DNA of 64,000 nt from Bispira polyomma. Taxonomy: Eukaryota. This document shows, in pieces, positions 24,301 to 51,800 of this stretch. The stretch's first letter is position 1; each line of letters begins with the position of its first letter. Position numbers and translations under genes: made by a program. The notes under the pieces were generated by a model, which made no database searches, was not told the origin of the DNA, and worked only from the letters and a program-made list of their open reading frames with translations. Location of the stretch: positions 24,242,001 through 24,306,000 of the forward strand of contig OZ287752.1 in the NCBI GenBank assembly GCA_965649765.1, in the 5' to 3' direction.

Positions 24301-27300
24301 GTGCAATTATAGTTTAAGTATAAAAACATGATGGATACCCGGTTGTGTGTGAGGTTTAAGTATAGGTTCAGTGTAAAACACAAGGGACCACAGGATATGT
24401 GTGGGGTGTAATTATGGTATAAGTATAAAAACACAATGAGCAGCAGGCTGTGTGTGAGGTCTAAGTATAGTGTAAGTATGGAACACAATGGACAGCAGGC
24501 TGTTTGTAAGGAGTAAGTATAGTATAAGTATAAAACACAATAGACAGCAGGTTGTGTGTGAGGTGTAACTATAGTATAGGTATAAAAACACAATAAGCAG
24601 CAGGCTGTGAGTGAGCTGTAAGTATAGTATAAGTATATAAAACAGAATGGTGTAAAAGACAATGAACACCAGGATGGGTATAAGCTGTAAGTATAGTCCA
24701 ATTAGCCAAACACAGTGGACTATAAGTGTTACATAGTTAGAGCATACAATTAACAAAAGCATTAATATATCAGATTTATGCATGATATATCAAAACCAGT
24801 TTTGTAATTTAAAAAGGTTTGTTGGTATGATGAGTGTTATTATATGGTTTATTTATGTAGCATTGTTCTATCAGGTGTTACACTATTGTAGTTTCAGCCA
24901 CCAGTATCACTATGAGTCAGGAACCTAGTGGTTTAGTCCCAGAGAACACACCCATAACCTTTACCTGTGTGACTGATGAAGCCAATCCTACAGCTACTGT
25001 GACATGGACTGTAGATGGTAGTAGTAGGAGTTCTACCAGTGACTCAACTATAGATGAGGGTGATTACAGTGCAGTGAAGAGACAGAGTGTATTGATACTG
25101 AAAGCAGAGAGAAGAATACATGATAAAAATGTAAAATGTGTGGTCAGTGACAACACAGGAGTGACTGCTGAAGAAACATTAAACATAGCCTGTAGGTATT
25201 TGTAGCAGTTGCATGGAATATTCACTTAAACACTTATACTTTAACAAACATAAACAAAGTGTTAAAACATGTGATTTATGCTTTAACTAGCAGAACTTTG
25301 AGGAGTCGAACACTATGTACTGACTGGTGCTTTAAGACTAATCTAGTAGTATCAGATTTAATCAAAACGTATATTTTTATCTGATGACAACTATTTACAT
25401 GCATAGTATGCATCTCTAAGCAAATCTTTGAAGTGGAATTGCATATTGTGATAGCAAACCTATTAACGATATTACACATATAACTAAATTCTATTAACGT
25501 TCTATGTCTGTCAAAGAAGAACCTTTGGTCTTAAGATTAAAACTATCATCCAGAATTGTTACAATTAATTTCTTGTCATCATTTTCTTTCTAAATAACAG
25601 AAACCCAATGAACGCAAAAGATTCAAAACGAAAACCCATCACTGCATTATGTATGGCACTGTTATGTCAATATTAGTATATTGTTAGCAAGGTTCTTATT
25701 TAATGTGTGTCTACTACAGTAGAATTATATTCAGTGAAGTAAATGGCATATGAATTTTCACGGTTCTGATTAACATATCAGCACTGCACATTTTACATTG
25801 TAGTTCCCCATGATATAATGGTAACACAGAGCCCACGTAATCATGTTGTTGATGGAACTGCTTTAACTTTATCCTGTGAAGCACAAGGTGGTAATCCATC
25901 TACTGTTTTATCATATAAATGGACATTTGTTCCCCGTTATGAAGTTTTTAGTGCTATTACTGGAGATTCAAACAGACAGATTGTATTCATTGCACAAGAT
26001 AAACATGCTGGGGAGTACAGTTGTGTGGCAACTAATGCTGGTGGAAGTAGCTATGGAAGCCTTGATGTAGTCATAAACTGTGAGTGTTAGCAAGACTATT
26101 TAGATATACATTAATCTGTACTGTATTTTGAGAGTTAAAAACAAAATGTATGTCCCTGTTATGTTGATTTCAGATAGCCCAGTGGATGTCAGTACTGCTA
26201 TTCAAAAGGTATTATATGTAGGCACTGACAGTCCAGCATTCTTGAACTGTTCCGTAAAATCTCATCCACAACTCAGCCAAGATGACATCACAATAAACCA
26301 CATAAATTCAAATATTAATTCTCAGTTCATAGAAGTTACATCTGTCACAAACAAAATAGATGAGGTCCTGGTGCAAATAATGTTCAGCCAACTAAGTGTC
26401 AGAAACATTGGATTATACCAGATGGTGGCTAATAATGGGATAGGAAAAGACTTACTCATTGAAATGGATGTCAGAGAACAAGGAAGTATTTTAGATATAT
26501 AAGTATATTAACAGCACTGTAGTTAAACCAATATGTAATGTACATATACTGTAGTTTTAGTTTATGTCCCAATGTATTAATTTGACAAGTAAACATATTA
26601 CAGGTATTCCCGAACCTCCCCAGCTTTTGAAAGTAGAATATGCCACTGCTGTTTCGGTTACATGCTCATGGATTACTGGAAGATCTGGAGGGCCAAGCCA
26701 GACTTTTACTATTTATTATAGACAGGAAAATGACACCAATATATCATTCCAGGGTGATATTGTAGATCCAGGTTTAAACACAACTGTTACTTACACCTTA
26801 CAAGGTTTACAACCAATGATTCTATATTATGTTAGTGTGAGAGCTATCAACAAATTTGGAAGAAGTCTCGATGAAAACGATCTACAAATAAGAACTTTAG
26901 GTAAGTAGACAATTAAGGATAAATAAAATGAACATCAGTTTGATGCTGCACAATACCAATCAAACCATGATACATTTTGTGCATGACATTTTTACAATTG
27001 TTAGTTAAGATTATTTACTGTTTATGTTTTATTCTTTTTGTCAGAAATGCCTGTCCTGGATGGTCCACTCACTGCAGATGTATACTCAAATATAGTTGTT
27101 TTGTACTGGGCTAATATAACAGGTCAATACTCTGAAATCATTGTTGTGAAATGTACACATTCTGGACCGATATGTCTTGAAATTGTAAGGTCCAGTACTG
27201 CCCCTTCACATTTAGTTATCCCAGATCCAAATATTGATGTGGACTATTACCTCGTCATTTACCAACAAGATGAGGAAGTTTACAGAGGCAAATTTTCATT

Positions 27301-28445: not shown

Positions 28446-30786
28446 ATTGTTTACAAAATTAACATGGTGTTTTTTACTATTTGTATTGTTTCTAACAAGA
28501 TATTTGCAAAAATAGCTAGTTTTATATATAATTTAGGTAATATTGTAAACAGTATAGTTTAGGATTGCAGTAATTACATACTAATTCAATTTTAATTTCT
28601 TTAGTTTCTGTATTTGCTATAAGTAATTTATAGTGGAACCTGTGTTAAAACATTTAGGAGATAGGTAGTCTTCAAAATATTTTAGGCCATATCACCAGTT
28701 TATAGTCTTAAAGTTGTCAGTTCTTTACATTTTGCCTTTTTTCTAATAGTATTAAGCAGTCTGTGTTTATGTCTACAAAAGAAACTGTTCATGTTATAAC
28801 TAAAAAGAGAACAGTGTGGTTAAATAATAGTGTGTATTACACAAGTGATCATGGGCAAAATTAACTTTCAGATTATTTTGACCAACCTGACTTTCAACTA
28901 TAGAGAGACTGTGATTTGACTAGAGTTAGGTTTCAGTATCACTAGCTGACAAGTTTAATGTTTATTACACAGTGTACACAAGCACACTCCCGTAATATTC
29001 CCGCCAAAAATTACACTTCCGGTAAACAACAAGCCCCCGCTTTCTCATGTGTTTAGCTGTTAAATTGTGTGCATTGGAAAATTCCCTCCCCCCCCCCCCC
29101 CGGCCTAGTACCAAAAAGCAAACGAATCTAAAATGAGTTACATAATACGAAGCTTTGACATATGACATGTTTAACAGCCTTAACAAGGCCAGCTTTAACG
29201 AGCAAAGCAGCCTCAACGAGGTCCTTTTCATTGTAGATTACTTCCCTAGTACGTAGCATTTTAGTTATTTTACTTTTACGTTATATCTCTTATTAATGTG
29301 TGTCTTACTTTTACGAAATAGCCTTTTTATTGTATACATATACATTACTGTAAATAATAATATACTTAGAGTAGTTCTAGATTAAGGTAAGATAAGGTAA
29401 CCTTTAAGTTAAGTTAGTCGTAGAATGTTTACTAACTTTCATATGTGTATAATACAATGCCCAAAGTTTTACAGGCTCGTTTGGATCTTTTCTTAACCCT
29501 TCTATGTCCATGAATTTAAAATGGACAAAATCATGTTACTTAATCATGTTTCATGTTACTTTGACCTACCTGACTCTCAGCTGGGGAGACTGATGTAATA
29601 GCTGGAGTAAATTGTTCACTTTATAATATATACTTTACAAAGCCCTATAATAAACTTTTTATTCACATTCACAGTACCGTAAAAAAACATGTGTATTAAA
29701 GAGGTAAATATTGGTAACATATAGCAAAAGGGGGTTCATGTTATGGTAACCCAGTTAGCATACTGTCTTATATTTATATCAACATAGGGTGCTGTAACCA
29801 GCAATATGCCTATCTTAGTACTATATCTCATATCATTCAAAGTGTATTTCATTCGATTGTTTGAATAATGTCACCCATGTATGGCACTGTATGAGTTTTA
29901 TATTATTTACCAGCTATTTTCCAAGGCAACTTTTGGGTTAATAATGTTCCGTTGTAGGGCACTTCATGAGTATCATATTATCGGATATTTTTAAGCATTT
30001 CCTGTCAATCTACCTGGGGTTTTCTGTCAAGTTATGTCATTTAGCTCATCAGCATAGGGCATGGAAAATACGACATATGTAAACTCGTAACCCCCTTTCA
30101 AAAAATTTTAAAGTTTTGGGGTTTATTTGGCTACTCTTATGTCGGTTAGCAATTTTATTAATATTACACTTTTATAATTTTATCTATTATGTAATATTTT
30201 ATGTACATAAAATTTCTATTTGTATAATACTTACTGACTTCTGGAACCTTCGGCTCTAGGTGACGTTTAACTCTATTAGTGCTTATAGATTAACAGAATC
30301 CTCAAGTTAATTTGAAGTCTTAATGGTGATGATGGTTAAATTACAGAATTTATTATTAATGCAAACTCTAATATAAAATTTCAGTTATGAAATTACATAT
30401 ACAAAGACAAAAGTTACAGTACACTGAATCTTATTCACTTGTGGTAAGAATAAAAATAAAGCCCAAAAATGATAATGTGTTTTTCTAATGCAGGGACAAG
30501 TCAGTTTCAAACATAATTCCCTTATTTACATTTCAGAGGACACCATAAGTATATTCAAATCATGTGTAGTTAATATTATGAGTTATTTGTATTACCATTG
30601 GCAGATAAAACATTAAGTTGTGTGTATTAGTTTTCAGTCAGTTTTTGTCACACATCGGCTTGAAAGAGTCAGCAATAAGGAAGTAAATAAAGGTACTTTT
30701 ATGTGTCATAATAACATACCTGGAATTTTCTATTCAGTATACAGTATGTAGGAATGAGGAATTAATGTGCATTGATCAAAAATACA

Positions 30787-30841
30787 ATGATTACTGATAT
30801 ACAGACTGCATTCTTTGTTTTACTTTTCATAGAGAACAAAA
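30787..30841 (+). CDS. Gene C exon 1, signal peptide MITDIQTAFFVLLFIENK
   Basis: 55 nt, A|GTACGT donor; GGAAGT at 30679. Confidence 0.78.
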
Positions 30842-33800
30842 GTACGTTTTTACAATTTATTTTCACTTCCCTGCAAAATCTAGAATATATGAAAGCTTTT
30901 TCTTATGAAAACATAGAGGATATAATATGTCAATACAAACATAAAATATAGCTAGGGTGTGCTTTTTACAATATTTTATAATACATTGCTTCCAGATTAA
31001 TACATTTGAGTATATGGAAGTTTTTTCGTATGAGACATAGAGAATATAATATGTAAAATAAAAACATAGCTGGGGTGTGCTATACATAATATTCTATAAT
31101 AAATTATTATTAATTTGCCTTCAGATTAATACATTCAAATATTGTAATGGTAATTTCACTTCTCATGTCGGATAAATATAATACTAACATATAACTGTCA
31201 TATATGACTGGTCATTGTGTTCATAGTTTCTGAAGATAAAGTCGCAAGTAGTGTATGTTGTACATTCTATCTGCAGTTCTCAGTCAGGATCTGATTGTGT
31301 ACACAGAAATCTCATCTACTGCAAATCTTCCCTGTGGTTCCACATCTAGACCCTTTCCAGATGATGCTGCCAGGGTTTTCTGGTATATAGGTGTTGATAC
31401 TGCAGATTCAAAAAACGAAATACTACACCATCAGTTCAGTGATTCATATTCTAGATACTACAATGGCTACTCCTCTCCTAAACACACCTGTAGTTCTGAC
31501 AGAGTCCTCAGTATCAGTGCTGTAGAGAATGACGACGAGACTACATATACCTGTAGAGCAATTGGTTCAGCAGTGGATTATACTTACATGGTGGAATTAA
31601 TAACATTGGGTGAGTTCTTATTTTATCAAAGCCATCTTTAAACTTAATTAAAAAGGTTAATGTAGGAGTGTTTCTATATTATCTGAATATGTTACTAAAT
31701 GTTACACAAACTAGGATGTGACGTGCATTTTGGGTCACCAAAGAACTGTCATATTCTTGTCACAGGTGATTTAAAAGCTTGCTGCACCTAAATTTATATC
31801 ATATTTGTATTGTAGGCACTGTAATATGCGTAAAATGCCAATACGTATGGTGGCATATTCGTGGCGTACTTTTTTTTTAAATTGGTACAAAAAGTAAGTC
31901 GAACTGGGTCAGGGGATAACTAGTGTGATAGACTATTTAACATTGTCATTCAGATTTGTACACTCCCATACAGGTAAATTAGAAAATCATGGTATAGTAG
32001 TGCTGATTAGCATTATGTCAAAATAATATATATTTCTGTGAAGTGTTTTTATGGACCCATTTAGCTAGCAGATCCATTTTATTATCTTGCATATCCGGAA
32101 TGTAAACTAAAGTTTACATTATATAGAAACATATTTTCGTAGTAGAACATGCACTACTTCAATGATTAAAATTAAATCCTGACAAAACTGAATTTATTCT
32201 CATTGGTAGTAAGAAACACAGAGTACCTGAGATTGTTATTCCCCATTACACTAATGGGCAATGATATATAGCCCTCTGATCACTCTGAACCTTGGTGTTA
32301 CCATTGACTCTACTTTCTTATGTGATACACCCATTAGTATCATTTGTTAGTCTTGTTACTATCGTGATATCAAAATAATTAGGAATCACTTGTCACTGCA
32401 TACTAATTCCCGTAATAGCATCCCTTGTAACTACCTTCAAAGCTGTTATTTCTCAACATTCCTCCTATCGTGTTACTCACCTCTCTTCCAATAACCTCAA
32501 AAGGGTAAAGAGACTTTCTGTATCCTCTGTTAAACCTACCAAGAAGACTGGATCTTTTACGTTCTCTATTACTGCCCCAATGTTATGAAACAGTCTCCCT
32601 GCAGAGCTTTGATCATTTGAAAAGCTTTCTGGTTTTCAGAAAAAGCTTAAAACCCATCTATTCAAACAACCCCTATAGTTCCCTCATTGTACACCCCACA
32701 TCCTTCCTTACGACTGTGGAAATGTTTTTGGACTTCTATATTGGTTAACTGATTCCGATGTTGCACTTTATAAGATGCCTCGAATCAAAAATGACTGGAC
32801 TGACCTCCTGCTATAATGCAAGGTGTGTAATATACTAAGGGATTTTCAAACTTCCTCACATTTGATTTTCTATGAAAACTGACTCAGAACTTATATCTGA
32901 AAAAAAAATTGGAATTGTTTTTTTAAAAGACACCCTAAAAGCCAAATTGTGTAATATCCTACTATCGGAATATTTTTAAGATCTATTAACAGTGTCCTAG
33001 GGTTACCTTGTAGTTGGTTTAGAACACAGTAATACTAATAGCCTTTGGGATAATTAGTTTATTCTAGTTGGTAATTTACTTTTATGTACAGACTGAAAAA
33101 CAAAGGTCACCAGTTTAAGATGGTTATAAAGTCACAACTTAACTGAGATTAAGTTAAGAGTTTAAGGTTACCCTATATTGAGTGTAAGTTTGAATTTAAG
33201 GTCATCTGTTTACGTTTACTGCTTAAAAGTGACCTCAGCCTAAGATACATGATATGGAATTTTGAGTATATAAGAGATTAAAAGAAAGCACCAAACCCCA
33301 ATCAGGAAGTAGGGTTGGATAGTAGGTTTTAAAATGTCATGGCTTATGTCATGCATTATGGTCTTTTGTGATATATTTCCACACACATTCTGATGTCCAT
33401 GTGCCATGGCTTGAGGTTATGCCTTAGCTTTGAGTCTGTCAGTGGGCCCCAACCCGTTGTAGCTTTAAATTGAAACAGATGGGAGTTTTGGCTGCCAGCT
33501 GAAAGGACTAGTGTATTCCTTATGGCCACTATTGGACATAATGCCGGGTTGTGTATATGGGGCACCTTAATTATTCTGATTGAATTCCTATCCTGGAGGG
33601 TTTTGGACCACTTGACTATTACGTGGAGACCCAGGGGAATAAAGAACACATCCACACTGGCTAACTGTTCCAGTGGGTTGAACGAATTTAATGAGTGAGG
33701 TACCAGGTTTGATATCCTGAGAAAAGAAAAGAAGGCTAGCAAGTAAGCTAACTTGAAAATTTGGCACATATACATGGTGTCACTGATTTGTACTATTTGA

Positions 33801-36800
33801 GTAAACAGAGATATCAATTACTTTACTGTGAATTCTTGCTCTGAAAGGTCTTTGCAAGGCTAGAGCCTTTTGGAAATACTTGAGACGCTGGTCTGTGAAG
33901 GCTGAGACATTGATTCCATACAGACTAAGCTTAGCTTTATTAGCAGCCAAATAATTGGCAATTGATGGCTGGGAGACTTTACTTGCTACCGATACTTGGA
34001 GAAATGACAGTAGTACTGTGAGTGAAATGTAGTCAATGTCAATGCTTGCAAATATGGTGTAAGCTAGAAATACTCTAAACATGCTTTTATATGTGTGTTG
34101 TGTGGCAGGCCTAAAGGTCTGGTGGGCTATGTGTGCTGCCTAGTCAGCTAATTGACACACCAGTAGTGATATATCTGAAATAGATTACATACTCCAGTCA
34201 AAATTTAGTATGTTATCTGATACTTCTACCCATTGGGGTTCTGACACTAGCTGTCGCAATTTAGTATTTGGATCAGGGGTTTTATGCCATCTAGATAGCA
34301 AATCAGCTGTCACATTAAGTTTGCCTAATATATGCACAGGCCTTAAGTTAATATCTGCCTCTGCTACTCCCATAAAGATATTTCATGCAATAGCTGCGAG
34401 ATTCTTTTGTCTTACCCGAGTTCAAAATAGTGACTACTGCTTGGTTGTCACAATGTACAACTAGCTTTTTGCCTTGCCATGTGTCTTTCTAGAGGCGAAG
34501 AGCGACTAGAATATTTAGCATCTCCAAGTAGGCTATATTAAGTTGTAAATAGTGAAGTGGAAGCAATTTCGTATAGATTACATTATTGCATCTACCCCCT
34601 AATCCTGTGAGGCAGGCATCTAGTTCAATCTGGTCAGTGACCGGGCTATGGTCGAAGAAGGCCTTACCATTGAATTTTTTAGTGAATTTAGTAAACCAGT
34701 TCAAATCTTGAAAAAAGGGGAGCCCTAGTTTGATGCGTTTACATCAAGGGCGCTACGTAGGACGTCCAGCATCGTATTGAGAAAGATTCTTGTTATGCGC
34801 ACACATTCTGATGTATAAATGAGGGACCCCAGCAATGATTGCTGGGGTATATAACTTATTACTTCATAGCCCTTTGTACACATGACGTAAGACAATGCCT
34901 CACTTAGGCATTGGAATATAGCACTTCCGTGTCTATAGCCAAATAGCAGGCATGTGTCGACATAATACTTATCTAGCTTCAGGCCTAGCAAATCATAGTC
35001 AGCTGGGTCTAACTTGACTTGACGAAAAGCGTGACTTATGTCCAACTTGTAAATTAATGCGTTTTTACCCAATTTGGTTGTCTCATTTGTGATGTCATCA
35101 ATTGTTGGAAGCGTTAACAAGAATTCCATGCCCAAGTACTGATTTTGGTGTATTGCTGCATTTACTGATTGGCCATGAGGAAAACTCGTATCAATTATAA
35201 CCCTTTTATGAGGGGCGCCAGGTTTTGCTCTGGTCATGAATGGTGATATGTTCAATCCTTCAATGGGAGGCCGATTAAACGGACCCAAAATTGCCCCATA
35301 ATCCTTTTCATCTTTCAAATATGCCTTAACGTCATCTTTGAACTTGCAAGCTGAGTGGTGATTTTGTTCATTATGCTTCAACTCACAATCTATGTCAAAA
35401 TCTAGTGGGAAGCCATACCGAATCAAATATGGTAACTGTCTATCCCAGTAATTTTTTAAAAGGTTTTTCCATTTGTCATAGTTGAGCTGTGAGTGTACAA
35501 CCAATTGTTTGTTCAAGAAATTGTGCTGAGTACTACTTCTTACCTCTATATGCATTTCAATGGCCGAGAGGTTTTTGAAACTCGGTTTTTCAGTGCTCGA
35601 ATTTATGATTTTATTAAGTGGAATGAAGCCGAACTTACCTTTTGTCTGGCTATTCCATTTTTGAAACGTTTTCTCATTTTTTACCCTTGCAACTATTTTC
35701 TTTTGTTTATTTTTTACTTGGAGTTGGAGGTTGTACTTGTCCTCTTGTACTCCACACGTGTCAGTATTTACTTTTACTGGTTCCTTGCACCTGGCAGTGT
35801 GTGTGCCCACCTTTGTGACATTTTGAGGGGGGGGGGGCTATTTCATTGAGAGGGAGAAGCGGGTCAAAGCGATTTTCAACAATTGGTGGTTCAGGCCTGG
35901 GCAATTTGCAAGCACCCACCTTCTTTGTGTTATGACAATTAGAATGATATACTTTACAGACATTTTTATGTACAATATCACATTTTTTTACACTTGCAAT
36001 GGCTTTCAAGGAACGACTGGGCAGGCTGTGTTTTATTTGAATTGCATTTGTCTACTAACCTGAAGCACAACTTGTGCATACGTTTTATTTGTAAATTTAG
36101 ACCAATCAGCTCTCCAGTTGTAGCTTGTGCCATTGCTATTACTCTAGTTACAAACATTTCTAGACAATGTGCGATTTGTTCTGTTTTTTAAATTACTTTT
36201 GCTATCTGTACATTTTATTGTTAAACCACCTGATTGCACTGCCTTTCGTAGTGCCTCGTTTTTTGCCCCAGCTACCTTTTTTCTACAATCTTTTTCCAGG
36301 TGGGGGAAGTTTTTGCCCATTGCAAAACAAGTCGCACACACATGTGTATAAAATTTGCCACTAGTTTCGTGGTCACTCTTATGGGGACATGTTCCTTTTT
36401 GATAAAATTTACAAGGCATGCTTATGCTACTGCCACTTTTACCGCCTTGTGACTGAGAGGAATTTTGAGCAGGTACATGTTTTTGAGCATGAGCTCATCT
36501 GAACCTGTCGATTTTATGTGTATCGAGCCAGGACATTTTGCCTTCCTCCATTTTACATAGAAGGACGGCGTGACTGCCTTTGGCAGCTGACCAGCTATGG
36601 TTATGGCAATCTGCCATCATTTCTGCGAAGTATTGTAAAATTGCATTTTTAATTTCTACATTTGTTTCTTCTTTTGCTAGAACACTAAACTCCAAAACCC
36701 ATTGAGCCGTGGAAAGATTGTCGTAATACATTCGATTTTTACTCTGACCTCCTAGGATAAAATTCCGGGGCCAAGGGACATGTTGCTTAACCCATACCTG

Positions 36801-39800
36801 TGCCCCCCCCCCTTTGAGACTTAAAGTTACCTGTCTCATTGATCCTTTGCAAGTCTTTAAGCCTGCTGTCGACTGACATCTGGAGCTGGTCTGACTGCCT
36901 TAAGGTCTGGATAGAGGGGACCACTAGGTCATCTGCATCTGTGGGCCACTGGTTCTGCTGCCTGCCAAATGCCTGCGCGTCTTGAGTCTGCTGTACCATC
37001 TGCTGCCTGCCAAATGCCTGCTCCTGGGGTTGCTGCAATGCCTGCTGTCTGTCAAATGCCTGCTCCTGGGGTTACTGCAGTGCCTGCTGTCTGACTAATG
37101 CCTGTGTCTGTGTGACAACCTGTGGTTGCTGCTGTTGTATCTGTGTGCTACTTACTGATTGTTTATTACTTGTGGGCACACTCGCTAATATATTTTCACC
37201 GGGGGATGTGTTAAACTGTCCACCAGTATCCACCCGTTTCTTCACTTTTTCCATTCTACTACCAAGTTCCTTTAACTCTTGGAGTATGCGAAGGTTTACC
37301 TCCGCTGCTGATATAGTTTTGTAACTTTGTATATCCTCCGTGTCACTTTGCATATCTTACCATGGGTATTGTTTTTTTTATTAGCTTTATGTGCTTTGTA
37401 TTACAGGCCCCACCAACCCCAGGGGAAGAAAGCTTAAAGACACATGAATTGAGCTTACTATTTTTATTATACATAAAATTGAGGTTATTGCTACTACTAC
37501 AATATATTTACACATCCATTAAGTAAACATGTTAAGTTCGTTATACACATTTAATTAGTACATTATGTATACTGATAAACCTTTAATTAGTACATTCTTG
37601 ATTCTGGCAACCTTAACTCAACACTCAGTCTTTCAAGTTAAGGCTGGTTTGACAGTAAACTATGATCACCTTAACATCACTTTAAGGGGACCTTAATGTT
37701 CCCTTAATTTAAGACATAATGATACAATTTACTTTAAGGTAACATTAACATGTGTATAATTTTGAAATATTGAGTAATAAGTAAAATTCATGAACAGTAA
37801 TAGCATAACATAACAGTAAAATTTCCCTCAAGCCCAACACTAGTGTAGTGCTGCATTTATGTAGTTATTTATCTAATATGGATTGAAACGAACGAGCTAC
37901 TTGCTCCCCCAAGTTGTGGTCTGCCTGGATGTACCTCCACACACAATTTGACGTCCAGGTGCCATGATGTTTGATCTGTTGTATTGGTATATTTGCATTA
38001 TAAGCAAATGTAGCACCTGAACGTCGGAAGGTGTGGAACGTAAAGTAATGCAATTGTACATTGAGTCTAGACAAAGTTTTCCTAATACGGGTATCCGTAA
38101 GCACTTGCCAACCTGCAGCAGTTCTGCACTGGAATAAGGGCTCATGTTGCTGAGGGTTATACAATTGAAACACGTCACGCAAGGCTTTGTATGGACAGAG
38201 GTGTGATTCACCTAGCTTGGGGAAACTAATGACATTGACCTTGTTTCTGTCTTGCATTGTCTTAGTCCATTTTATTAAGACCTTGACCAGAGATTTGGTG
38301 AAGAAGACATCGCCCCCTGCCAAGTGTCTAGTGCTGTCAAAGGTATGCAAAGAATGTGGGGCAAGATTTGAGGCTCTAAAAAAAACAAAAAATGCTGTTA
38401 GAAACACAGCCTTGAAAACCTTGCCATGATGCATTTTTTCACATAATGATATCAAACTTTTTAGTGTTACTACATCCATGATGTTTCTACGTGTTATTGA
38501 TATGGGTCTATTAATTCTAACTGCTTTTACAAAGTACTTGATTTTGGGTTGCTCAAGGCACTGATAGGGGAGATCATAAATGATGCATTTTGCCTTTATG
38601 GCTGATATATAATTGCTAATCATGTTGACTGAGACTCCACTTACCACCAAACATTCCATAAAGGCCAACACTACCTCAGTATTGATATCTGCTAATTTAA
38701 CTTTGACATGAAAACAAAATGACACAAAGTTCTTGAATAACATGCTGTAACATCTTTGGGTCTTTGGTCGAAATGTCTGTTGCAATCTAGCACTTGCCTG
38801 ACCTGACAGCCATGCCACCACACTGTGACCTACAACAAAGTATAGTATCATTAGTTATCAGTATGTGCTGTAGATTATAAGTCATTATCTAATTCTAACA
38901 TTTCAATACACACAGGAAGCCATACTGGCTGTTGCACATACAATAATAATTCACTGTTATTTTCCACTGTATTCTGCCATCTAGACAGGAGATCGGCAGT
39001 TCTATTCAGTTTGCCCAGCACATGGATGTACTGCAGATCTACATCTGCCAGTGCAGCCAGATACCACACATTCCTGGCACAGGCCCCCAAGAAAGGGTCC
39101 CTGGCCCGACCTGACTGCAGCACTTTCACTACAGCATCATTGTCACATTTAATTAGCACTCGTCTACCACTCCAATGTTTGTAAAACAACCTCAAGGCAA
39201 GTAATATATTGATCATTTCTAAATGAACAATATCTAGCTGTTTGTAACCCCTACATATTCCAAGGTGGTATACCATGTCTTTCCATCTGCCCCCCAAACC
39301 TGTTAGGCAGGCATCTAGTTCTAATATAAAATCAGCATTTTTATGGTCATACATCGATATGCCATTGTATGTTGGCAGAAATTTAGCGAACCACCTCAAG
39401 TCCCTAAAGAAGTCTGCAGTCAATTGAATTTTGCCCCCATGCTGGCTTTTTCTCAAGAGCTCCAGCATCCTGTTTAAGAAGAACCTGGCCGGCTTTACAC
39501 ATTTGTGTACATACAGTAGCAGCCCCAAAAGGGACTGCAACTGCCTAATAGTACAAGTTTTTCGGTTATGCCATTCCTTGACAACTTCATTAATTTTGTG
39601 CAGCTTATCTTGGGGAATCGAGATAGTTCCAGTTTCTGTATTAATGAGGACTCCCAAACACACAGCCTGTGTGCTAGGGGGTATCAATTTCATTTACAAG
39701 CCGCACATTTATAAAGTCTATGGGATGCCATCTCCTTAATAGTTCACTATAATTTTTAAGTCACTGAAATACAATATAAACAAGACCATGCTTTGACATT

Positions 39801-42800
39801 TGCGGATATTCGGGTGGATGTGAAATAAATTGTAATCTGACCACAATAAAAGTAGAAGTAAAATACTTCCCCCAACAATTTGCTACAACAAACAGCAGAG
39901 CAATATTCGCATATATGAAAGCATTTCGTCGTTTGTAACACTCCAGTAAGATCATCAAACGTCAGTTGAATCTAAAAAGATTAATTCCTACAAAATTATT
40001 TTGTTCATAAACAATAATACTTTAAAGCTCCTGTGAAGTATACACCTATATGAACAGTCCATATAGTTTGAGGTTTTTTACAAGGTAATATTATATACAG
40101 GTTTACGTAATGTAAGGGTAAAAATATTCTTGTTTAAAATAAATTGAAAATTTTAATTCCCAAGTCCAACGTGAATACCAATTCTTTAAGTAAACACTTT
40201 TTAAGCTTTTTGCTCGCCATTCATGTAAAAAAAATTGAATATTTTGTGATTATTTGTAATAGTTAACCTTGTGGTTACTAGTCATATACACAAAGGGAAT
40301 ATGTGGTAGACTATGATATAAAATATAATTTAACCTCGATCTAGATTATCTGGAATTTGAAATTTACTTAGTTATTAATGGGTTGAGGTAAAATTACCTT
40401 TAAATTTAGTAAGATATTATTACTATTACTATGCATTTTTAACGCGCTTTATTGATGCCAGGCATCTTCTAATGCGCAACAGCAGAATCAGTGATCCAAT
40501 CGTAAAGTCCATGGGCATAGCAAGGTAGGGTGGTAAACTGGCATTCCCTGTTGCTACTCGGTTCGGCAGTTCTAGTAAAGAAGCAGCTCAGATTGTTTAA
40601 AACCAATTCTCAGTAGCAAATAAATTAAATGACTTATTTCAGCTAACAAATGCATACTTTCTGTCATTATTCATATAATTAGCCTAAGCTTCCTTTCAGC
40701 ACATTCCGACGTCGGCCAATTTGTAGGTGTCCAATCCGATCCAACATCAGCCAACGTTGTTCTTCTTTTTATCCGATATATACTTAAAATATATTTACAG
40801 TTAAATAAGGGTACCCATATTTACTCTTGATGTGTAACTGACGTCATTATGACGTTGCTGTGACGTACTATTAACAGTAGAAGGGGAAAGTTAAGCGAGG
40901 TACCCGTCTATAAAATTAAATATTTGAGGAATAGTGAGTATATATCGGGGTAAAACTATACCCATGATTGTGTTTTTGTAGCCATTCTTGTTTCAAACTC
41001 GGACAGTCCTACCAATTTTCCCCTCACTGACTGATAAATTTTTATTGTGTAACAGACGTCGGCCGACGTCTGATCTGATCTGAGGGAAATATGTTCAATG
41101 GAAGCCATTGGTCATATTAAATAATGACTGCTAAAATTGGCCGATGCCTACGCTTTCTTTCAGCACATTCCGACGTCAGCCGATTTATGTCTGTCTCATC
41201 TGATTCTACGTTGGCCGAATTGTGCTTCCTTCCTTTCAGTCGATAATAAAATAAGCTTTCTCATGCCATTTTTTAACCTCAAAATATGAAGAATATTGAG
41301 AATATATCCGATGAAACCTTTTCCTATGATAATGTATTTGTATTAGTTTGTTGTAAAATCGGACAAGTCTTTAGGATTGCAAACTTGGACTTCCCTTCAC
41401 CTGTTGAGCCATTTCCAGGACATTTGTTATTTCTTGGTCGGTGATGATGCCATTGGGTTGGCTCAGAACATGATGAAGATATTTTAACGACAGAAATCCA
41501 ATGAAGAAATAATATTTAACTACAGATTATCTTCAGTCCATAGAATTGTAGAGAGTGCCTTCTGTATCCTCACCTATATGTTCCCTACCTTGCTGACCAC
41601 TTTTCAACAATAGCCATGAACTGTTAAGTCGATTGTGTTGGCATTTGCTTGCTTGCACAATCTAATGGGCAACAAGTATCCAGCTTTGCAGAATCCGGGG
41701 ATGGATAGTGAGGGAAATGAACAGAGAGTGCCAGAATGTCAGGGGTCATACTCAGTTTTCATGCAGGACCGCCCATATTTGGTACTAGTTGCAATTATAA
41801 GCAGAAGTCGAACCAGCAACCTTCTGATCACCACACAAAATCCATAACCACTGGACCATGGGAGACCAAAACATTACCCTTATTTGACCATTGATCTTAG
41901 AGAGGGGCCACAATAAGACAATCTTTGTCTGCATTTGCTTTTTACACTGAGAAATATTTTTTTTAAGTTCAGTAAATCCCTTTGAGATCAAAGTGAATCC
42001 CTCTCAGGCGAGTGGTGATCAGGCCTCCAAGGCCAGAGGTGTTCAGGCCACGGAAGCTGGTCTGTGACAGGTTCACTTGGTCTGGTGGTGGCTTGAAGGA
42101 GGTGGACGCTGTGGCTGTAAATAGGTGGTCTATTGTGTCAGTGTTGTCATCGTCTTGTACCGCATCATTGACTGAAAAATTTCTTGCATGAAGCCGGTCA
42201 GCCGCATTCAGGTAAATTGCCATCCACAAGCCCAATACAGTGGCAGAAAGAGAGTTTGGAGAATATTGCGTCATCCACCCGCCTGCTACTGGATTTCGCC
42301 AGTCGTGGGCTGACTCTAGTGACTAGGTTTGGGTGGGGCGGGGCCAGGGGTCGACTCGGGATGGTTCACATTGCTCAGGGTTATGTGCTATGAGTAGGCA
42401 ATGTTTGTCAGCACCTTGTGCTCCGAATCCAGATCACCACTCCCACCTAATGGATAGGCAGGTACCATATCCAGCCTTCAAGTCTCATTTCTGGTTACAA
42501 GATGCATCTCCAAGGAGCCAAAAAGATCTCAGTTTTTAAAAAAATACAACAAAAATTGGTAAGCATTTTGGTAACTCTGAGTGGCCCGTTCTTCACAATC
42601 CTGGTCACCTACCCCCTCCTCCATCATCACCAGAGGTTAAGGGTTTCCTTAGACGTAATCGCAGGGGCTGCCCCACAGAGTGTATGAATTTTAGGTTCCC
42701 CATTCCAGCTTTTCTACTCTTTCCTTTCCCCTTTCCATTCTTTACTACAACTTTCGGTGTCATTTAAATGTCACAGTAAAAATTAATATAACCGTTAATA

Positions 42801-45800
42801 TACCAGTTAATATAACAGCATAAACACAATCTTCAACCAAATATACTTTAATTTTTTTTTACTCTAAATCGAGTTGTTTCTTCCATCACCACTTGTTATT
42901 CACGTCTTTTACAAGGTTCGTATATAGCAGTATACCCCTGAGCATGTATATGCTGACTGGATCCTTGAAATTTGAAACTAGAGATACAAATGACATTAGC
43001 CATATGACTTTTTTGTACCTACTTGACTTTCAATGGGGTGGCCAGCAGTTAAAATCTTTACATTTTGCAAACAATAAAGTACTTTTCCGCTACCTCTCCT
43101 GAGCTTTGGCACATGCTTTTCTAAAGAATTTTAACCTTCCTTTGCAGGATAAGCATTAGCCCTGCTGTGCACCAACATTTTTCACATTGATGCACATACA
43201 ATTGTCCACCAGAAGGATATGCTTTGTAAATACAGTTTACTCTTTGAAAGAATAGACAAGGAATACTGAGATTCACTAACTACCCTTTCGCTTCACGGAT
43301 TCCGTCAAATTGTATGTTTTTTACACAATTTCCCTCTGGTGTATACCTAAATTGCCATGAAATAGCAGTCTGAAAGAAAACTTGAGCTTCTGCTGTTCGT
43401 CTCCTCACTGGCTGAAGAGTTCAATTAACCTGGGGCCTGTATATCGAAGCCTTTGTTACAGAAACAAGTTCGTTAGGTCTCAGTTAAGGCTTAGTTTGCA
43501 AAGTTTAAAGTAAATGAAAACCTTAGTTAGTTTACTGTGGATTTACTTCATTCGTAAAACCCCCAAAATTGAACGACAACTCTAGCCCTGTCGTTATATT
43601 AGCAGAACTTGGCCGCTAGCTGACCTAGTATGCCCACCCATGGTCAGGCTTAACAATTTTCACTTTTAAAAGGTTTTAGCTTATTATTTAATGATTGTAA
43701 ACCTCTACTTATTACTAACTTGTACAAAATATTGTCTCAAACTATTATTTTACTGTCTTACACACCTAAACCGTACTTACCTTATTTCTACTACCTTCAA
43801 AATTAGCTGGACTGTCAAAATAAAATTCTCTAAAAATATATTATATTTCAGAGGCCAACATAATATATTTAATTCATGTGCAGTAATATCACATGATATT
43901 TATATAATCTATGGCAAATAAAGTGCTCTGTTCTCATGAATGAGCAAGTAAAATAAAAAATCCATGCTGTAATATCATACCTATAATTTTTTATGAACTA
44001 TATAGTCAGTGTGCAACAATAAGGTATTAATGTGTTTTTTATATTACTTTTCTTGCAGAAAATGTACATCTTTATAACTTATAACTACATCAATATGAAA
44101 TATCCTTCTTAGATAATATGCAATCTTATGTTTATATAATGTAGACATAATTTCTAAAATATAAGCATCAATTAATCACTATATGAATATGTCATAATAA
44201 CTTGTTATTCATTTTCATTCAGATTAATATATAAAACTATTGTCAGTTTATCCTGGGGTTCTTTGTCATTGCAGACATATCCTGATGCTGTTGTTCAACA
44301 GTCTGTTTAAGGGCTATTACTGGTGGCATTTTGTTAATGGTCATCAGATACTGTTTTGTCCTGATCAGATACTAAAAAGACTTCACCAACAGACATGCCT
44401 TTTACATGTTCTTGATCATTCAGTAACTTGCCTTCTTTTGTGCACTGATTTGAAGAGTAGTTGGGCAGATCAGTCAATTGCGGAAGGATAGTTCATCTAT
44501 TACTTTAAGATCATTGTCTTCTCTTGGTAGAACACCATTTTGCCGACTCAGGCCATCTACATTACCCAACTTCCTGCCTGCTCTATGTTCTATAGTAAAG
44601 TCATACTGTTGGAGATAGGTAACCCATCTTGGAATTCTACCAGTTGTTTTCTTTTGATCAAAGAGCCACTTTAAGGCTATATGATCTGTTACTATCTTGA
44701 AATTATTACCTTTTAAGTATGGCTCAAAATGTTTCACTCCAAGTATACAAGCTAAAGCTTCTAGTTCTGAGACACTATATTTCTTCTCTGCATCTGTGAA
44801 TTTCTTTGCAGCATAAGATAAAACCCTCTCCTTTCCATCTTGAATCTGGCTAAGGATCATGCCAGCTCTATGGACACTAGCATCAGTATACAGTATGTAT
44901 GGCTGCTGGTATCTGGCGTAAGCTAGTATTGGGGAAATAACCAAAGCATCTTTCAAATCTTGGAAAGATCTTTCTTGAGCTTCTCCCCAAACAAATGGAG
45001 TGTCTAGCTTTGTAAGTTCTGATAGGGGTAAGGCCTGTTCTGTGTACTTCTATATGAACCGACGATAAAAGCTTGTGATTCCTAAATAACTGCCTAATTC
45101 TCTAAGAATAACCTGGCAAGTATCTGGTAAAGGCTCTACTCCCTTTGCACCAACTACATTCCCTAAAAATCGCACCTCCTTGCAACAGAACACACACTTC
45201 TTTGGTTTTAATTTGAGATTTGCAGCCTCTAACCTATCAAAAACAATTTTCAATCTTTCTAAATGTTCATTGAAAGTCTGTGAATAAATGATAATATCAA
45301 GATAGACCAGGCAAATTTTCCATACAAGACCTTGGAGCACACTAGTCATAAGTCTTGCAAAAGTAGATGGTACATTCTCCAATCCAAAAGGCATTCTTTC
45401 AAACTCATATAAACCATCATGAGTGACAAAAGCAGTCAGTGGCCTGGATTCTTGAGCCATCTCGATTGGCCAATATCTGCTCTCCATGTCAAGAGTAGAA
45501 AAATATGAGGCCTTTGAACTTCCCAAAGATTCCATAGAATCATCCACTCGAGCTATTGGATGACTATCTGGTATAGTATTCGAATTCAGAATCTCCAGGA
45601 ATCATCTGGCTTTTTAACCATAACCACCGGTGAAGCATATGGACTACGAGAAGGTCTTATAATTCATATTATAATATATATGTCTTTTCACTCATATCTC
45701 GTACTTGCTGTGATATTTCATCTCTTATTCTTGGGTTGCTGCCATAGGGAGCAGACCTAAATGTTCTAGGTCCTAGGTTTATTTCATGTTTAAGAACATG

Positions 45801-48800
45801 TTTAGGGTACATCCTAATTCTTTCCCTGGCACTTGAAAAAGGTTTCTATTATCCCACAGAGCATCTTTTAACTGCCTTTCTTCCGACTCAGTAAGCGAAC
45901 CATTGCTCCATTTAAACAACTCTTCAAATTCTTGTCTTGAAATGGTGTTTTCTGTTTTGGTCTCATAATTACCAGCATACCCACTTGACTCTATGACTTG
46001 TACACAATCCTTCTCTCCAAGCACCTCCAGGTGTGCAACACAATCACCCTTTTCAAAACACATAGGAATATCTTTTGTATTCCTTAGCTCAATTAGCACA
46101 AGCGGATTTCTTGGTTTGATGTTAGTAATACTACACCTGATATTGGTAGATTGTAAAATTCCAAAAGGACAGGGATCTATTTTTACTACAGCAACAACAT
46201 CTAATGGTTCTTTTAGAGTTCCATAAAGCAATGTCTCTTCTAGTGGATTCAGCTGATAATCAGTTTGCATGTACACATCAAGTGTCTCTGGTATTTTGAT
46301 CGTGTTCCTGTCAAAGTCCAAGCATACACCAAATGCTTCTAGGAAATCTATTCCAAGTAAGACTGGGTAGGGCATGCAAGTAACATACTTCAATTTCCAA
46401 CTAATGATCTGACTTCCTATAGTAAATGCAAATGGAATCACCCCTTGTATGGCTGTATTTCAAGTATGGGAAACATCTGTAAAAGTTCAGGTCCTGCCAG
46501 AGATATAGTAGCGCCTGAATCAACCAAGGCATAAACATTCTTATTATTCTTTTTTAACTTCAAAAATGTAAGTCCACTAGTTCTATTGTCATTAGGGGTG
46601 AGGGTGAGAGCAACTAAGACCTTCTCTGTTGCGCCCAAGACCCCACCTGAGGCGCACTCCAGTTTAAATGAGCATCCTGTTGCTTGAAACTTTGTTGGTT
46701 TCTTTGAAATTGTGGACAATGCCGTTTAATATGACCTCTTCTATTGCATTTGAAGCACACTAAATCTCCATGTTGAGGACGTCTCACACAATTACTAACA
46801 GTATGACCGTAAACTTGACATCTATTACAGAACATTTGGCAAATTCCTCTCCCTGGTGCAGTGTTTTGATTGGGCTTATCCCTGGTCAAGCTACTCTTTA
46901 GAAAAACCATGTCCTCCTCTGTTGATTGATAGTTTCCTGGAGCTCTCCAATTAGCTTTGTAAAATCTTCCAATTTCTTTAGGTGGTTTTCTTATAAAACA
47001 TATATCCTATTACCTTGGTGGTCTTTAGGCTTGAGCTTCTCAATACTTTCAGCCAGCCTGGCTTTGCTTTCAAGATCATCAACTGTTTATGGCTGGTGGC
47101 CTATAACAAAAGCTTTAATGCCAGGCAATAATCCATGTAGGATGATACTCCTGGTCTCAGCTTCTCCTTTTTGTAGTTGGTCACATCTCTGTCTCACATT
47201 AGTAATACAACTCTCCATTGATTCTGTAGGGAACTGTACCCTCGAGAAAAGCCCTTGCTCCTTAAGCCATGTCAGGTTGTTTGCATTTATAAACTTCTCA
47301 GAGAATGCTGCGTGCACTCCGTCCTAATCTTGATGAACATCTTCTGGCAAACTCCCATACCAAACCTCCGCAGCCCCTTCTAAAAGCAATCGATACATTC
47401 TTGATTTCCTCTGTTCATTCATATTACAGTACTCTGCATAACTCACAAAGCGTTTCATCCATCGTTTGGCATCTTCACAGGAAGTTCCTCTAAAAGGAGC
47501 AGGCCGTAATGCAGCAGTTTCTGGAAAAGGTCCATGTTGTTGAATAGCATCCTGCAACTGTGTGTGATATTCCTCTTGTTGATCTCTTTGGTCTGCAAGT
47601 CGTTGTTGAAGCTGATCCTGGAGCCCACCCTGTACATCCCCTTGATTAGCGAGTCGGTGGAGTTGAGCCCCCAATTCCTCAATATTTTGAGCCATTAGAT
47701 CTAGATATGCCATCCTTGTCCTCAAGTGATAGTAACTTGTTACCCTCGGAGGCTTTGTTTGAGCTTCCAGGATGCTAAATTAAAATTATAAGCAGTTAAA
47801 ATTACAGTTGCTGTTGTCAGCACAGTTCAAATTCATACTGTGGACACTTCTATTGCCACTGGGTAGCAACCATGTTCTGCTCGGATATGTGTTGTTACTT
47901 CCTTGGTAGTTACCCTTTTAAATTTACAGTAGGGGCAGCCATATGTCCATGCAGTAGTGGTGACATTTGACCAATGTATTGAAATGGCCCTGATACCAGA
48001 AAGTGTGGTCTCTTCATCTGCGTAAGGGAAGCTGGTAGAACTAACATCGGATGATTATATATTATCTTGCATGTTTGTTCATGTCTCATGACTTCTTATG
48101 AAATACCCGGCATCTCCACCAATTGTTATGAGGTTATTTTCAGTGGTCAGTCTTGACCACTTGCTTGTCAGTTCAACCCCATATCGGCTGGGATCTTTTA
48201 TCTCAGAGAAGTATGAAGACAAGAAAAGATAAACTTGATCACTGTCACAACATTTATTAGTAAACAGCACGACACTTACATAATAATTATCCAAGTAAGA
48301 GATGTAACCATAACAGTTACATGTATCCAACTGACTCCCACTAAGCTTTATTAGACTTTCTCTAGCTTCACTCCAGCCTCCACTCCAACTAACTGTGTGT
48401 CTCTGGACTAAGCTTTATATAGTGTTAATAGCATTTATAGGGATCTAAAGTTATTTATGGAATTTAGAATGTCATGTGGGTATGAAGTTTAGGAAGTTCC
48501 TTTACATAACATTCCATTGGTGTCAAGTGAGTTATGGCACTGGACACCAATGGAATGTGATGGCATGTATTGAATGTTATGTAAGAACAAGTTCTAATGG
48601 AATTTTGGTCATAACAATACCTACCGTTAGAGTGTCTATGATTTACAGTAATTTTATATACAGGTGTTGATTCCACAGGGGACTGCCGGTTCACTAATAT
48701 CATTAGGTCCACCTTAAGACATTTTAAGGATTTCACGTTTAGTTATACTTTCTGTCTGTCCATCAATAAAAAAATACATAATCTGAAATTGGAATTGATG

Positions 48801-51800
48801 TATTTTTTTTTATATTTTGTGGGTACATGTGCATATATATAAACTAGTATATATGAAACACTATATGAGTAACACCTGAGTAACACATATGACGTTGCAC
48901 AGATACCTTATGTCATTTGTTCAAATAAAAGACTTTAGAACAAATTTGATAATAATTATATCATGTATGTGTGTATACCTTTTTACATGTAGCCATAGTG
49001 CAAGCAGTACTTATATCCATATTTAAAAATACATACAAGTCAAAAAAAATTACATAACAACAAGCGTAAGTATAGTTTCCTTAATCATATTGTGTACATT
49101 GTTTTGTTTTATCTGCTTTATTATTACTTATTACTTAGAATGAATGTTTACTCAGATTAATAAGTTGTTGTTGCTTCAAGTTTTCGAAGTTTAGAAACTA
49201 AGTTATTATTTCATTATAAGTTACTTACATATTACAATAATGTAAAATTAATAAATGAATGTAATTTAATAATAAATCTAGGTAATGTTAAATTTACTAT
49301 TTTAAAAACTTATTTTAGTTTCTCCATCTCAACCAGTACTCAGTGGTTTAGTTTTTGAAGAGAACAATCCCACAACAGTTCAATGCACAGTACAGTCAGT
49401 AAAGCCAGGTGTGGGCAGTGTAGTGTTTACAGTGACAGTAGATCCAGACTTCAATGTCCAGAGTTTAGACAGTGATTTATCAGAGGGATCAGCAGATCCT
49501 ACAACAGGAGCCCTGTCAGTGAATTACTCACCACACATCTCACTACAGAGAAAACACAATGGGCAGCTGGCTGTATGTGAGGTGGTCTGGAGAGGAGGGG
49601 TAGGAACTGTGACATCAGAGGGGAAAACTGTGGCTGTGAGATGTATGTATATATTAAGTACGAAACACAATAGACAGCAGGTTGTGTGTGAGATGTGAGC
49701 ATAGTATAAGTATAACAACACAATGGATAGCAGGCTGTATGTAAGATAAAAGTATAGTATAAGTATAAAAGCACAATAGACAGCAGGCTGTGTGTGAGGT
49801 GTAAGTATAGTATAAGTATAAACACTATGAACAGCAGGCTGTGTGTGAGGTGTAAGTATAGTATAAGTATATAAAATTCGATGGACAGCAGGCTATGTAA
49901 AAATTGTTAGTATAGTGTAAGTATTAAAACTCAATGGACAGTAAGCGACAATGGACAATGCGAAGTGTAAGTATAGTACAAGTATATAAAACTCAATGGA
50001 CAGCAGGCTGTGTAAAAATTGTTAGTATAGTGTAAGTATAAAAACTCAATGGACAGTAAGCTGTGTGTGAGGTGGTCTAGATCGAAGGGAACTGTAACTT
50101 CAGCATATGAAAGTGTGGCTGTGAGATGTAAGTATAAGTATGAAAGACAATGTACACCAGACTGGGTATGAGCTGTAAATATAGTCTAATTAGCAAAATA
50201 CAGTCAAGTCTAAGTGTGATATGGTTAGAGCATACTACTAACAAAATTAATGATATATCAGATTTATTGATGATATATCAAAAACAGTTTTGTAATTCAA
50301 AATATTTGTTGATATGATAAAAACTGTATCAATGTCAGTATACATGAGGGTTATTATATGGTTTGTTTGATAACCTTGTTTTATAAGGTGTTCTACTATT
50401 GCAGTTTCAGCGACCAGTATCATCATGACTCAGTCACCCAGTGGTTTAGTCCCAGAGAACACACTAATAACCTTTACCTGTTTGACTGATGAAGCCAATC
50501 CTACTGCTACTGTGACATGGACTGTAAATGGTAGTAGCACCAGTTCTACCAGTGACTCTACTGTAGATGATGGTGTTAACAGTGCGGTGAAAAAAGAGAG
50601 TGTATTGATACTGACTGCAGAGAAGGGATTTCATAATAAAACAGTCAAATGTATGGTCAGTGAGAACACAGGAGTGACAGCTGCAGAAACATTGAACATA
50701 GCGTGTAGGTATTTGTAGCATTTACATGAAATTGTCCCTCTTACTTTAACATATTTAAATAAAGTGCTAAAACATGTGATTTATGCTTTAACTAGCACAA
50801 TTGTTTGAAAGTTAAACATTGTGTTATCGGCAACTATTTCAAGATCACTCTAGTAGTATCAGATTTATTCAGAATGTATTTTTGTACCTAATTTAACTGA
50901 TCATCACTATTTAAACAAATGTTTGAAGTGAATTTTTTAAATATTGCCATACAAAGCCTAGCGAAGATATATTATTCATATTGCTCAATACCGTTAAAAT
51001 TTTCTGTTCATTAAATAAGAAACTGTTATCTAAAGACTGAAATGATCAACCAGAATTATTACAATTAATGTCATAATTGTTTTTTTAATCAGCAGAAAAC
51101 TATTGAAAGCAAAACATACAGCAAAACAAAAGACCAGTAACTGCTTCATATATGCTACTGTCATTTTAGTATTAGTGTGTGGTTAGCAAGGCTCTAATGT
51201 TATGTATTTCTGTGTTTGCTATGGTATAATTAAATTCAGTGCGTGATATAATCGGAAAACTACCCAAGTGATGTATATTAAAAAATTATATGACGAAAGA
51301 ACATAAACAGTACTATATAAGCCTAGGAGGGTGAGTATTGTGCATTTTATCTTTTTAAGTCATATCATTTTTAATATACACCAGAAGTGTAGGTTTTCGT
51401 TTTTATCCACTTATAAAATATCATTACATTAAGTTATATAGTTAAAAATATAACATAAACAGTCCGAAAAGGGTGTAAAATATTAAAAATTCAAGACAAA
51501 ATAAACAAAAAGTACTGACTTGCTACCTTAAAGAATTAACTTCAAATAGAAACTTCTACCACTCTAAAAATCGCATTTTGTTCACAATATAATTGAATAA
51601 TGCTTATATTTTCTACATATCGAAATTTTTAAACAATAAGTTGTTTACTTTGACAGTATTAAAACAAACCCAAACTGTATAAATTCTTTGTTTACGTTTC
51701 AAAACCTTCCATTATGACGTCACAATACAAATTTGAAAGCCAAGAAGTACAGAGTTGGTACCATAAAGAATTAACTTCAAACTCATATTTATAAGGCACT

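Follow-up and report, generated by a model that had tools for sequence, protein, structure and literature searches.

Can a receptor gene that has lost its own V exon keep working by using a V exon left upstream by another gene? The question is raised by gene C, one of four immunoglobulin superfamily (IgSF) receptor paralogs that self-comparison identifies in tandem, all on the plus strand, within a 64,000-nucleotide (nt) stretch of the Bispira polyomma genome (contig OZ287752.1; G000:C5:24242001-24306000, hereafter the window). The V exons of genes A, B, C, and D lie at approximately 2.2, 21.8, 31.3, and 58.8 kb of the window, respectively, and the genes of this family are built in the order of signal-peptide leader exon, V-set exon, Ig/C2 exons, FN3 exon, transmembrane exon, and tyrosine-rich tail, with V-set, C2-set_2, and fn3 domains recognized by Pfam in the exon translations. 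At gene C, the V exon (V_C) and the first constant exon are 17.7 kb apart, and a second, broken gene front lies between them. Judged from the sequence, gene C is best explained as a composite locus within a tandem IgSF receptor cluster that evolves by birth and death. Searches beyond the window covered the organism's own whole genome (1.04 Gb).

The coding exons of gene C

The sole complete reading frame at the locus runs from the gene C leader through V_C and across a 17.7 kb intron filled with transposable elements (TEs) to exons 3–10. In the following, a head denotes the promoter-proximal block, leader, and intron 1 of a gene; heads fall into two types, C-type and ordinary, which are described below. 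The features of the C-type head and of the coding exons, given in window positions, are:

30509–30786, plus strand: promoter-proximal block of the C-type head, homologous to the upstream blocks of other heads and grouping with the three other C-type heads (support 100/100)
30787–30841, plus strand: exon 1, ATG and 18-codon signal-peptide leader, 55 nt, ending in phase 1 with donor GTACGT (read directly)
31277–31609, plus strand: V_C, V-set exon, 333 nt, phase 1 at both ends, donor GTGAGT (Pfam V-set, open frame)
31610–31728, plus strand: start of intron 2, C type, common to the cassettes at 16.80, 25.42, and 69.94 Mb and not to genes A, B, and D
49319–49642, plus strand: exon 3, first of the constant exons, Ig-like, 324 nt, phase 1 on either side (splice sites read)
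50405–54195, plus strand: constant exons 4–10, all open, with AG/GT splice sites
50405–50704, 51977–52252, and 52372–52683, plus strand: exons 4, 5, and 6
52811–53107, 53295–53564, and 53706–53869, plus strand: exons 7 (FN3), 8, and 9 (transmembrane)
54040–54195, plus strand: exon 10, the last exon, including the stop codon (54193–54195)

Analyzed individually rather than as one joined spliced model, these exons comprise 828 codons (2.49 kb) with zero disabling lesions. The preliminary description of this DNA had regarded the leader, V exon, and constant exons as intact and phase compatible. All of them are indeed open and bounded by AG/GT sites, although there are ten coding exons and not eleven, and the phase compatibility of the two halves is weak evidence because most exon junctions of gene C are in phase 1.

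The leader of gene C matches paralog leaders in length and phase. V_C scores 32.1 bits against the V-set profile (PF07686, cutoff 26) and retains the LPCGS, WY, and YTC motifs with the two core cysteines and the tryptophan; a word-based protein search with V_C returned no candidate. Codons 36–55 (31382–31441) share only 43–67% identity with every other V exon, vs. averages of 74–80% for the others, and may represent a loop under diversification or a patch from some other donor. Exon 3 is 84–87% identical at the amino-acid level to exon 3 of the paralogs, and the best solved relative of exon 4 is the Ig domain of the nephrin-type protein SYG-2 (PDB 4ofy, E 2.4e-7).

A head relic inside the intron and a probable beheading

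Three features close to exon 3 record what appears to have happened to the gene body:

43818–44244, plus strand: relic of an ordinary (B/D-type) head with promoter-proximal block, damaged leader, and the first ~180 nt of intron 1, aligning with the heads of genes A, B, D, and other paralogs
44247–48616, minus strand: 5' 4.4 kb of a Ty3/Gypsy element, antisense and adjoining the relic, with long terminal repeat (LTR), zf-CCHC gag, reverse transcriptase (RT), and RNase H
48640–49318, plus strand: 3' part of intron 2 left in the beheaded gene, homologous to 22630–23687 of gene B

The relic had been noticed in the preliminary description at 43830–44244; alignment to paralog heads confirms it and moves its start to 43818. 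An internal deletion of about 47 nt took the ATG from its leader, of which a remnant persists at 44030–44063 with the donor GT at 44064. Through the same deletion, an ATG further upstream (44030) has come into frame with what remains of the leader, giving 11 codons in phase 1 with the GT donor retained, and a V-less transcript from the 44030–44063 remnant is formally possible.

The Gypsy piece displays LTR, zf-CCHC, RVT_1, and RT_RNaseH in Ty3/Gypsy order (5' LTR at approximately 48122–48616, RT at 45050–45547, RNase H at 44474–44956) and ends just past RNase H, without integrase and without 3' LTR. In other copies in the genome, LTR matches occur in pairs 11–13 kb apart and the element extends past the point at which the window copy stops, so that ~7 kb appears to be missing from the window copy. 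Beyond the LTR, homology to intron 2 of gene B restarts at 48640–48646, corresponding to 22630–22636 in gene B. The V exon of gene B ends at 22184, which places the restart ~430–450 nt past the V exon; the match had been recognized before, at a distance then given as ~330 nt.

The index of sequencing runs yielded three DNA runs and no RNA run. The assembly was checked over 43300–49299 with short-read DNA contigs from two samples. Contigs from both samples cover 43554–44428 with zero differences, and the junction between relic and Gypsy is therefore real and no assembly error. At the LTR/intron junction (48616), no bridging contig was found among those listed, which at this point hold only the flanks of other LTR copies.

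A single deletion from intron 1 of the ordinary head into an antisense Gypsy in intron 2 very probably beheaded the gene, because the relic belongs to the ordinary clade of heads, exon 3 and what is left of intron 2 resemble gene B, the part missing from the Gypsy is precisely its far end, and the junction is present in independent contigs. The earlier proposal that the remnant adjoins a broken Gypsy devoid of integrase and 3' LTR agrees with the profile matches, the LTR pairs, and the bridging contigs, and its corollary, that one deletion took the V exon along with these parts of the element, is supported by the same model.

A tblastx comparison of 31610–49318 with the rest of the window, including genes A, B, C, and D (E ≤ 0.01), detected no constant-exon relic; matches in this interval were limited to TE-to-TE similarity, the leader relic, and the intron-2 homology from 48646. 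This bears out the prior statement that 31609–49319 holds no homolog of what were then counted as exons 3–11, and the degenerate constant exons between 31.6 and 43.8 kb that would have spoken for another history were likewise not found by tblastx. We rejected the idea that gene C merely has a native intron swollen by TEs, as in gene D, since gene C contains a head relic and gene D none.

Two lineages of heads

Searches with the V exon and with exon 3 returned 33 and 74 matches, respectively, nearly all on one chromosome. A tree of 12 promoter-leader-intron 1 segments from this chromosome resolves two clades, each with 100/100 support. Ordinary heads are those of genes A, B, and D, of two further genes, the proximal heads at 25.42 and 69.94 Mb, and the window relic. 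The four C-type heads are those of gene C, a lone leader and a leader with V at 25.42 Mb, and a leader with V at 69.94 Mb; a genome-wide DNA search with the gene C head identified no further C-type head. Since the gene C head and the relic fall into different clades with full support, we discarded the notion that they are recent tandem duplicates. All four C-type heads lie upstream of an ordinary head or the remains of one, and not one of them is followed by an exon 3 of its own.

V_C clusters in the tree of V exons with both other C-type V exons and with a V at 16.80 Mb (support 85/88). The latter is a mosaic that carries a leader and intron 1 of the 16.7 Mb type and was rejected as a clean C-type cassette for this reason. 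A breakpoint exactly at the V_C donor is ruled out, as the first 50–120 nt of intron 2 are common to other C-type cassettes and the C-type intron thus continues past V_C.

The two sister loci on the minus strand clarify where such cassettes come from. At 69.94 Mb (G000:C5:69930001-69950000), the layout of gene C recurs in decaying form: the C-type leader and V are intact, and the spacer behind them contains the decayed remains of A-type exons 5 and 6 and of the beginning of exon 7, disrupted by stops and a frameshift. These relics indicate that the cassette is the surviving front of a once complete upstream gene. The locus as a whole is dead, and the assumption that all four loci with the gene C layout are working genes was abandoned. 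At 25.42 Mb (G000:C5:25410001-25430000), three heads stand in a row, namely a lone C-type leader, a C-type leader with V, and an ordinary leader. The V and exon 3 that follow the ordinary leader are of another subfamily (37% and 52% identity), the constant set behind the heads is 84% identical to that of gene C, and two V exons are found in front of one constant set. The state of the proximal V exon differs among the loci:

Window: deleted
16.80 Mb: only 110 nt of the 3' end left
69.94 Mb: donor reads AT in place of GT
25.42 Mb: donor reads GC in place of GT, with a weak context

The donor GT is intact in all of the 16 other V exons checked.

Headless and bodiless copies occur elsewhere in the cluster. 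A 70–110 nt 3' V-exon fragment, ~2 kb upstream of exon 3, is common to 16801142–16803503 and to a copy at 11.16 Mb (G000:C5:11162912-11165368), and the latter has no complete V in front and is headless. At 22.30 Mb (G000:C5:22304499-22306008), an orphan A-type V cassette, comprising the V flanked by a portion of intron 1 and the beginning of intron 2, is 80–88% identical to gene A; its V has an open frame and no constant exon within 15 kb.

Selection and timing

Branch-specific dN and dS (nonsynonymous and synonymous substitutions per site) were obtained by least squares from pairwise distances on the V tree with 500 bootstrap replicates. V_C has the longest private branch (dN 0.109, dS 0.349), with a dN/dS of 0.31 (bootstrap interval 0.16–0.58), or 0.22 without codons 36–55, and dN fell below dS in all 500 replicates. 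The private branch of V_C is under purifying selection. The orphan V at 22.30 Mb yields a dN/dS of ~0.84, although the interval is wide. The constant exons of gene C, compared with the closest set (25.41 Mb; dN 0.079, dS 0.223, ratio 0.35), are under purifying selection as well.

The Gypsy piece sets an upper bound on the age of the deletion. It shares 91.4% identity with young copies, whose identity to each other is 98%, implying that it inserted at most ~0.08 substitutions per site ago and that the deletion is younger still, and far younger than the V_C branch. Compared with a young copy, the piece has accumulated at least 8 stops and at least 5 frame changes in 3.5 kb (at least 13 lesions), some of which may be older than the insertion. 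The neutral expectation for the 2.49 kb of gene C coding sequence since the insertion is ~9 lesions, vs. 0 observed; with a deletion time uniform since the insertion, the probability of zero lesions under neutrality is ~0.11. On that assumption of a uniform deletion time, this lesion clock favors continued selection by ~9 to 1, which constitutes modest support.

Proposed history and competing explanations

In the history that we envisage, an ordinary paralog would formerly have occupied approximately 43.8–54.2 kb, and a Gypsy would have inserted antisense into its intron 2. A later deletion from intron 1 into the Gypsy would have taken out the remaining intron 1 sequence and the V exon, together with the first 430–450 nt of intron 2, the integrase, and the 3' LTR, and a separate small deletion the leader ATG of the beheaded paralog. 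The older C-type promoter-leader-V cassette would have remained 12 kb upstream of the relic, where transcription from its promoter could join the strong V_C donor to the acceptor of exon 3; the distal cassette may have been used with the downstream constant exons even before the deletion. Overall, we lean slightly toward V_C being spliced to exon 3 in a working receptor with a swapped V domain, with both the splice and the promoter activity predicted from sequence features. It is conceivable, if rather doubtful, that C-type cassettes are dedicated distal V modules bearing their own promoters, which would survive the death of their own body by splicing onto the constant exons of the next gene; the family would then have a variable-constant organization encoded in the germline. 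Once a distal V had taken over, the proximal V could become dispensable time and again, as the four independent kinds of damage may reflect.

Several observations weigh against a working gene C. Pseudogenes are frequent in the family, and one example is gene A, which looks like a pseudogene in the present assembly owing to an in-frame stop at 15070–15072 within its FN3 exon. The main body at 69.94 Mb has an in-frame stop in exon 5. An open V is little proof by itself, given that the orphan V at 22.30 Mb is open too, and with the V at 16.80 Mb being a mosaic only three clean C-type V cassettes remain. The selection signal of V_C could stem from a period when it still had its own constant exons, and the intact constant exons of gene C are also explained by a very recent deletion. 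Promoter integrity cannot be read from the sequence: a block of the form AGGAAGTAAA with an ETS-like GGAA core, located ~100 nt 5' of the ATG, is retained in 8 of 12 heads (aligned window positions 30669–30680 and 43941–43952), whereas the relic head has GCAA as its core and three other heads have GGAC or GGAT. We dropped it as a marker of a live promoter since, besides being mutated in the relic, it is altered in two C-type heads.

The foremost rival is a dead locus, in which V_C is an orphan relic and exons 3–10 are a recently beheaded pseudogene, both still intact through shortness of time. We consider this unlikely, though with an appreciable chance of being correct: orphan heads and headless constant sets are common along the chromosome, the identically arranged locus at 69.94 Mb is a pseudogene, and the time since the deletion, bounded by the Gypsy insertion (at most ~0.08 substitutions per site), is short compared with the V_C dS of 0.35. 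Nevertheless, the neighboring 3.5 kb of Gypsy has at least 13 lesions and the 2.49 kb of coding sequence zero, so that on the dead-locus view the deletion must have occurred within about the final quarter of the period since the Gypsy inserted. Moreover, V_C maintained a dN/dS of 0.31 on a private branch of considerable length, even though the genome contains no C-type head with its own working body. Two heads precede one constant set here and at 25.42 and 69.94 Mb, which could point to a strict variable-constant unit of the protocadherin/UGT1 kind that still operates by alternative choice of cassettes; this is improbable given that the second V of the window is gone and the second leader has no ATG, that the V exons have acceptors, unlike true variable first exons, and that the distal cassette derives from a decayed complete gene.

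We attach hardly any probability to two further readings. A V-less product could arise if the 34 nt relic remnant (ATG at 44030, donor at 44064, phase 1) were spliced to exon 3, and both its frame and its retained donor are read directly in the sequence. However, a signal peptide would need more than the 11 residues of this start, the conserved GGAA promoter block has mutated to GCAA in this head, and an in-frame fusion would be expected by chance in one of three cases anyway. The 17.7 kb stretch between V_C and exon 3 could also be an assembly artefact made of misjoined repeats, as it is rich in TEs and neither the junction at 48616 nor those within 32–43 kb are bridged by the listed contigs. 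Such a misjoin is extremely unlikely in view of the difference-free coverage of the relic/Gypsy junction in contigs of two samples, the single-copy nature of the flanking unique segments, and the identical order of head types at three other loci.

Other features of the region

The remainder of the interval between V_C and the relic is made up of repeats and low-copy sequence, and a minisatellite lies at the end of exon 3:

31729–32149, no strand: single-copy spacer (an own-genome search of 31612–32155 finds only itself)
32150–32792, no strand: interspersed repeat, many copies at 74–82% identity
32970–39974, minus strand: one or two DIRS/Ngaro-like tyrosine-recombinase retroelements antisense to the gene, with two sets of RT and recombinase frames (open reading frames; RVT_1 and integrase SAM-like matches)
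40412–43602, no strand: spacer of old repeat fragments and low-copy sequence, without relics of the gene family
49635–50071, plus strand: 53-nt minisatellite, starting inside the last 8 nt of exon 3

The ends of the 32970–39974 element match a 5 kb copy on contig C6. Repeat fragments in the low-copy spacer occupy 40412–40536, 40790–41150, 41368–41750, 41780–42845, and 43428–43602. The minisatellite copies the donor region of exon 3 about 8 times, each unit with a donor-like GTAAGT, and its position is conserved: it also occurs at 4343–4737 in gene A, at 23920–24720 in gene B, and in other paralogs including those at 25.42 and 69.94 Mb.

An intron of gene A harbors a sense-strand tyrosine-recombinase element. 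Gene D has its V exon at 58797–59126, followed by a native intron 2 of 13.5 kb in which nothing head-like was found, and this indicates that long introns are tolerated in the family. The body of gene D (G000:C5:24314606-24320596) is shorter and consists of exon 3, exon 4, a second, divergent exon-4-like exon, and exons resembling exon 8 and the tail; homologs of exons 5–7 were not found in it.

Relation to known systems

Outside antigen receptors, variable heads that share constant exons are known mainly from the vertebrate protocadherin and UGT1 clusters. The family resembles these in having more than one promoter-bearing variable module in tandem before one constant set, with the variable part forming the ligand-facing domain. 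The preliminary description had suggested that two promoter-V cassettes once shared one constant region in this manner; the C-type heads are indeed distal and devoid of their own exon 3, but the arrangement departs from the protocadherin/UGT1 layout. Modules here comprise two exons, leader and V, and every V exon has a cag acceptor, in contrast to a true first exon with a donor and no acceptor. Only two modules are present per locus, the second being destroyed in the window, where one V is left in front of the constant set; two such modules before one constant set are present at 25.42 Mb. The distal module, furthermore, comes from a complete gene that lost its body.

Lepore-type hybrids, as in hemoglobin Lepore and the KIR/LILR genes, arise by deletion or unequal crossing-over between tandem paralogs. 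Gene C is similar in that its 5' part derives from an upstream paralog (C-type head) and its 3' part from the next one downstream (B-like relic, intron 2, and exon 3), with loss of intervening sequence in a fast-evolving receptor cluster. It differs from a seamless homologous crossover, as C-type intron homology ends within 120 nt of V_C, and a head relic, 12 kb of unrelated spacer, and a cut Gypsy are still present within the new intron. The locus has undergone at least two separate lesions, and an end of the deletion lies in a TE.

To our knowledge, a distal-cassette layout has not been described for the Alr allorecognition genes of Hydractinia, an invertebrate IgSF family that offers a parallel in other respects. 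Both are single-chromosome clusters of type I receptors with V-set-like domains and tyrosine-motif tails (bioRxiv 10.1101/2022.03.04.482883, PMC9546547), and many pseudogenes and mosaic members are common to the two. They belong to different phyla, without detectable sequence relationship, and the layout here is V, Ig/C2, and FN3. The likeness to SYG-2/nephrin-type proteins (PDB 4ofy) consists of an ectodomain of C2-set Ig and FN3 domains and is limited to the domain level. The receptors described here additionally have a V-set domain at the N-terminus and a short tail with tyrosine motifs, and their family has expanded in a single lineage.

If the gene C locus is dead, it would represent one more casualty of birth-and-death evolution in this cluster. 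If the V_C–exon 3 junction is real, a recognition domain would have been swapped without homologous crossover, by a retrotransposon-associated deletion that handed a gene body to a spare upstream head. Should the distal cassettes have been in use before the deletion, the family would provide an invertebrate case of variable heads on common constant exons and would bear on the origin of diversity in invertebrate recognition receptors.

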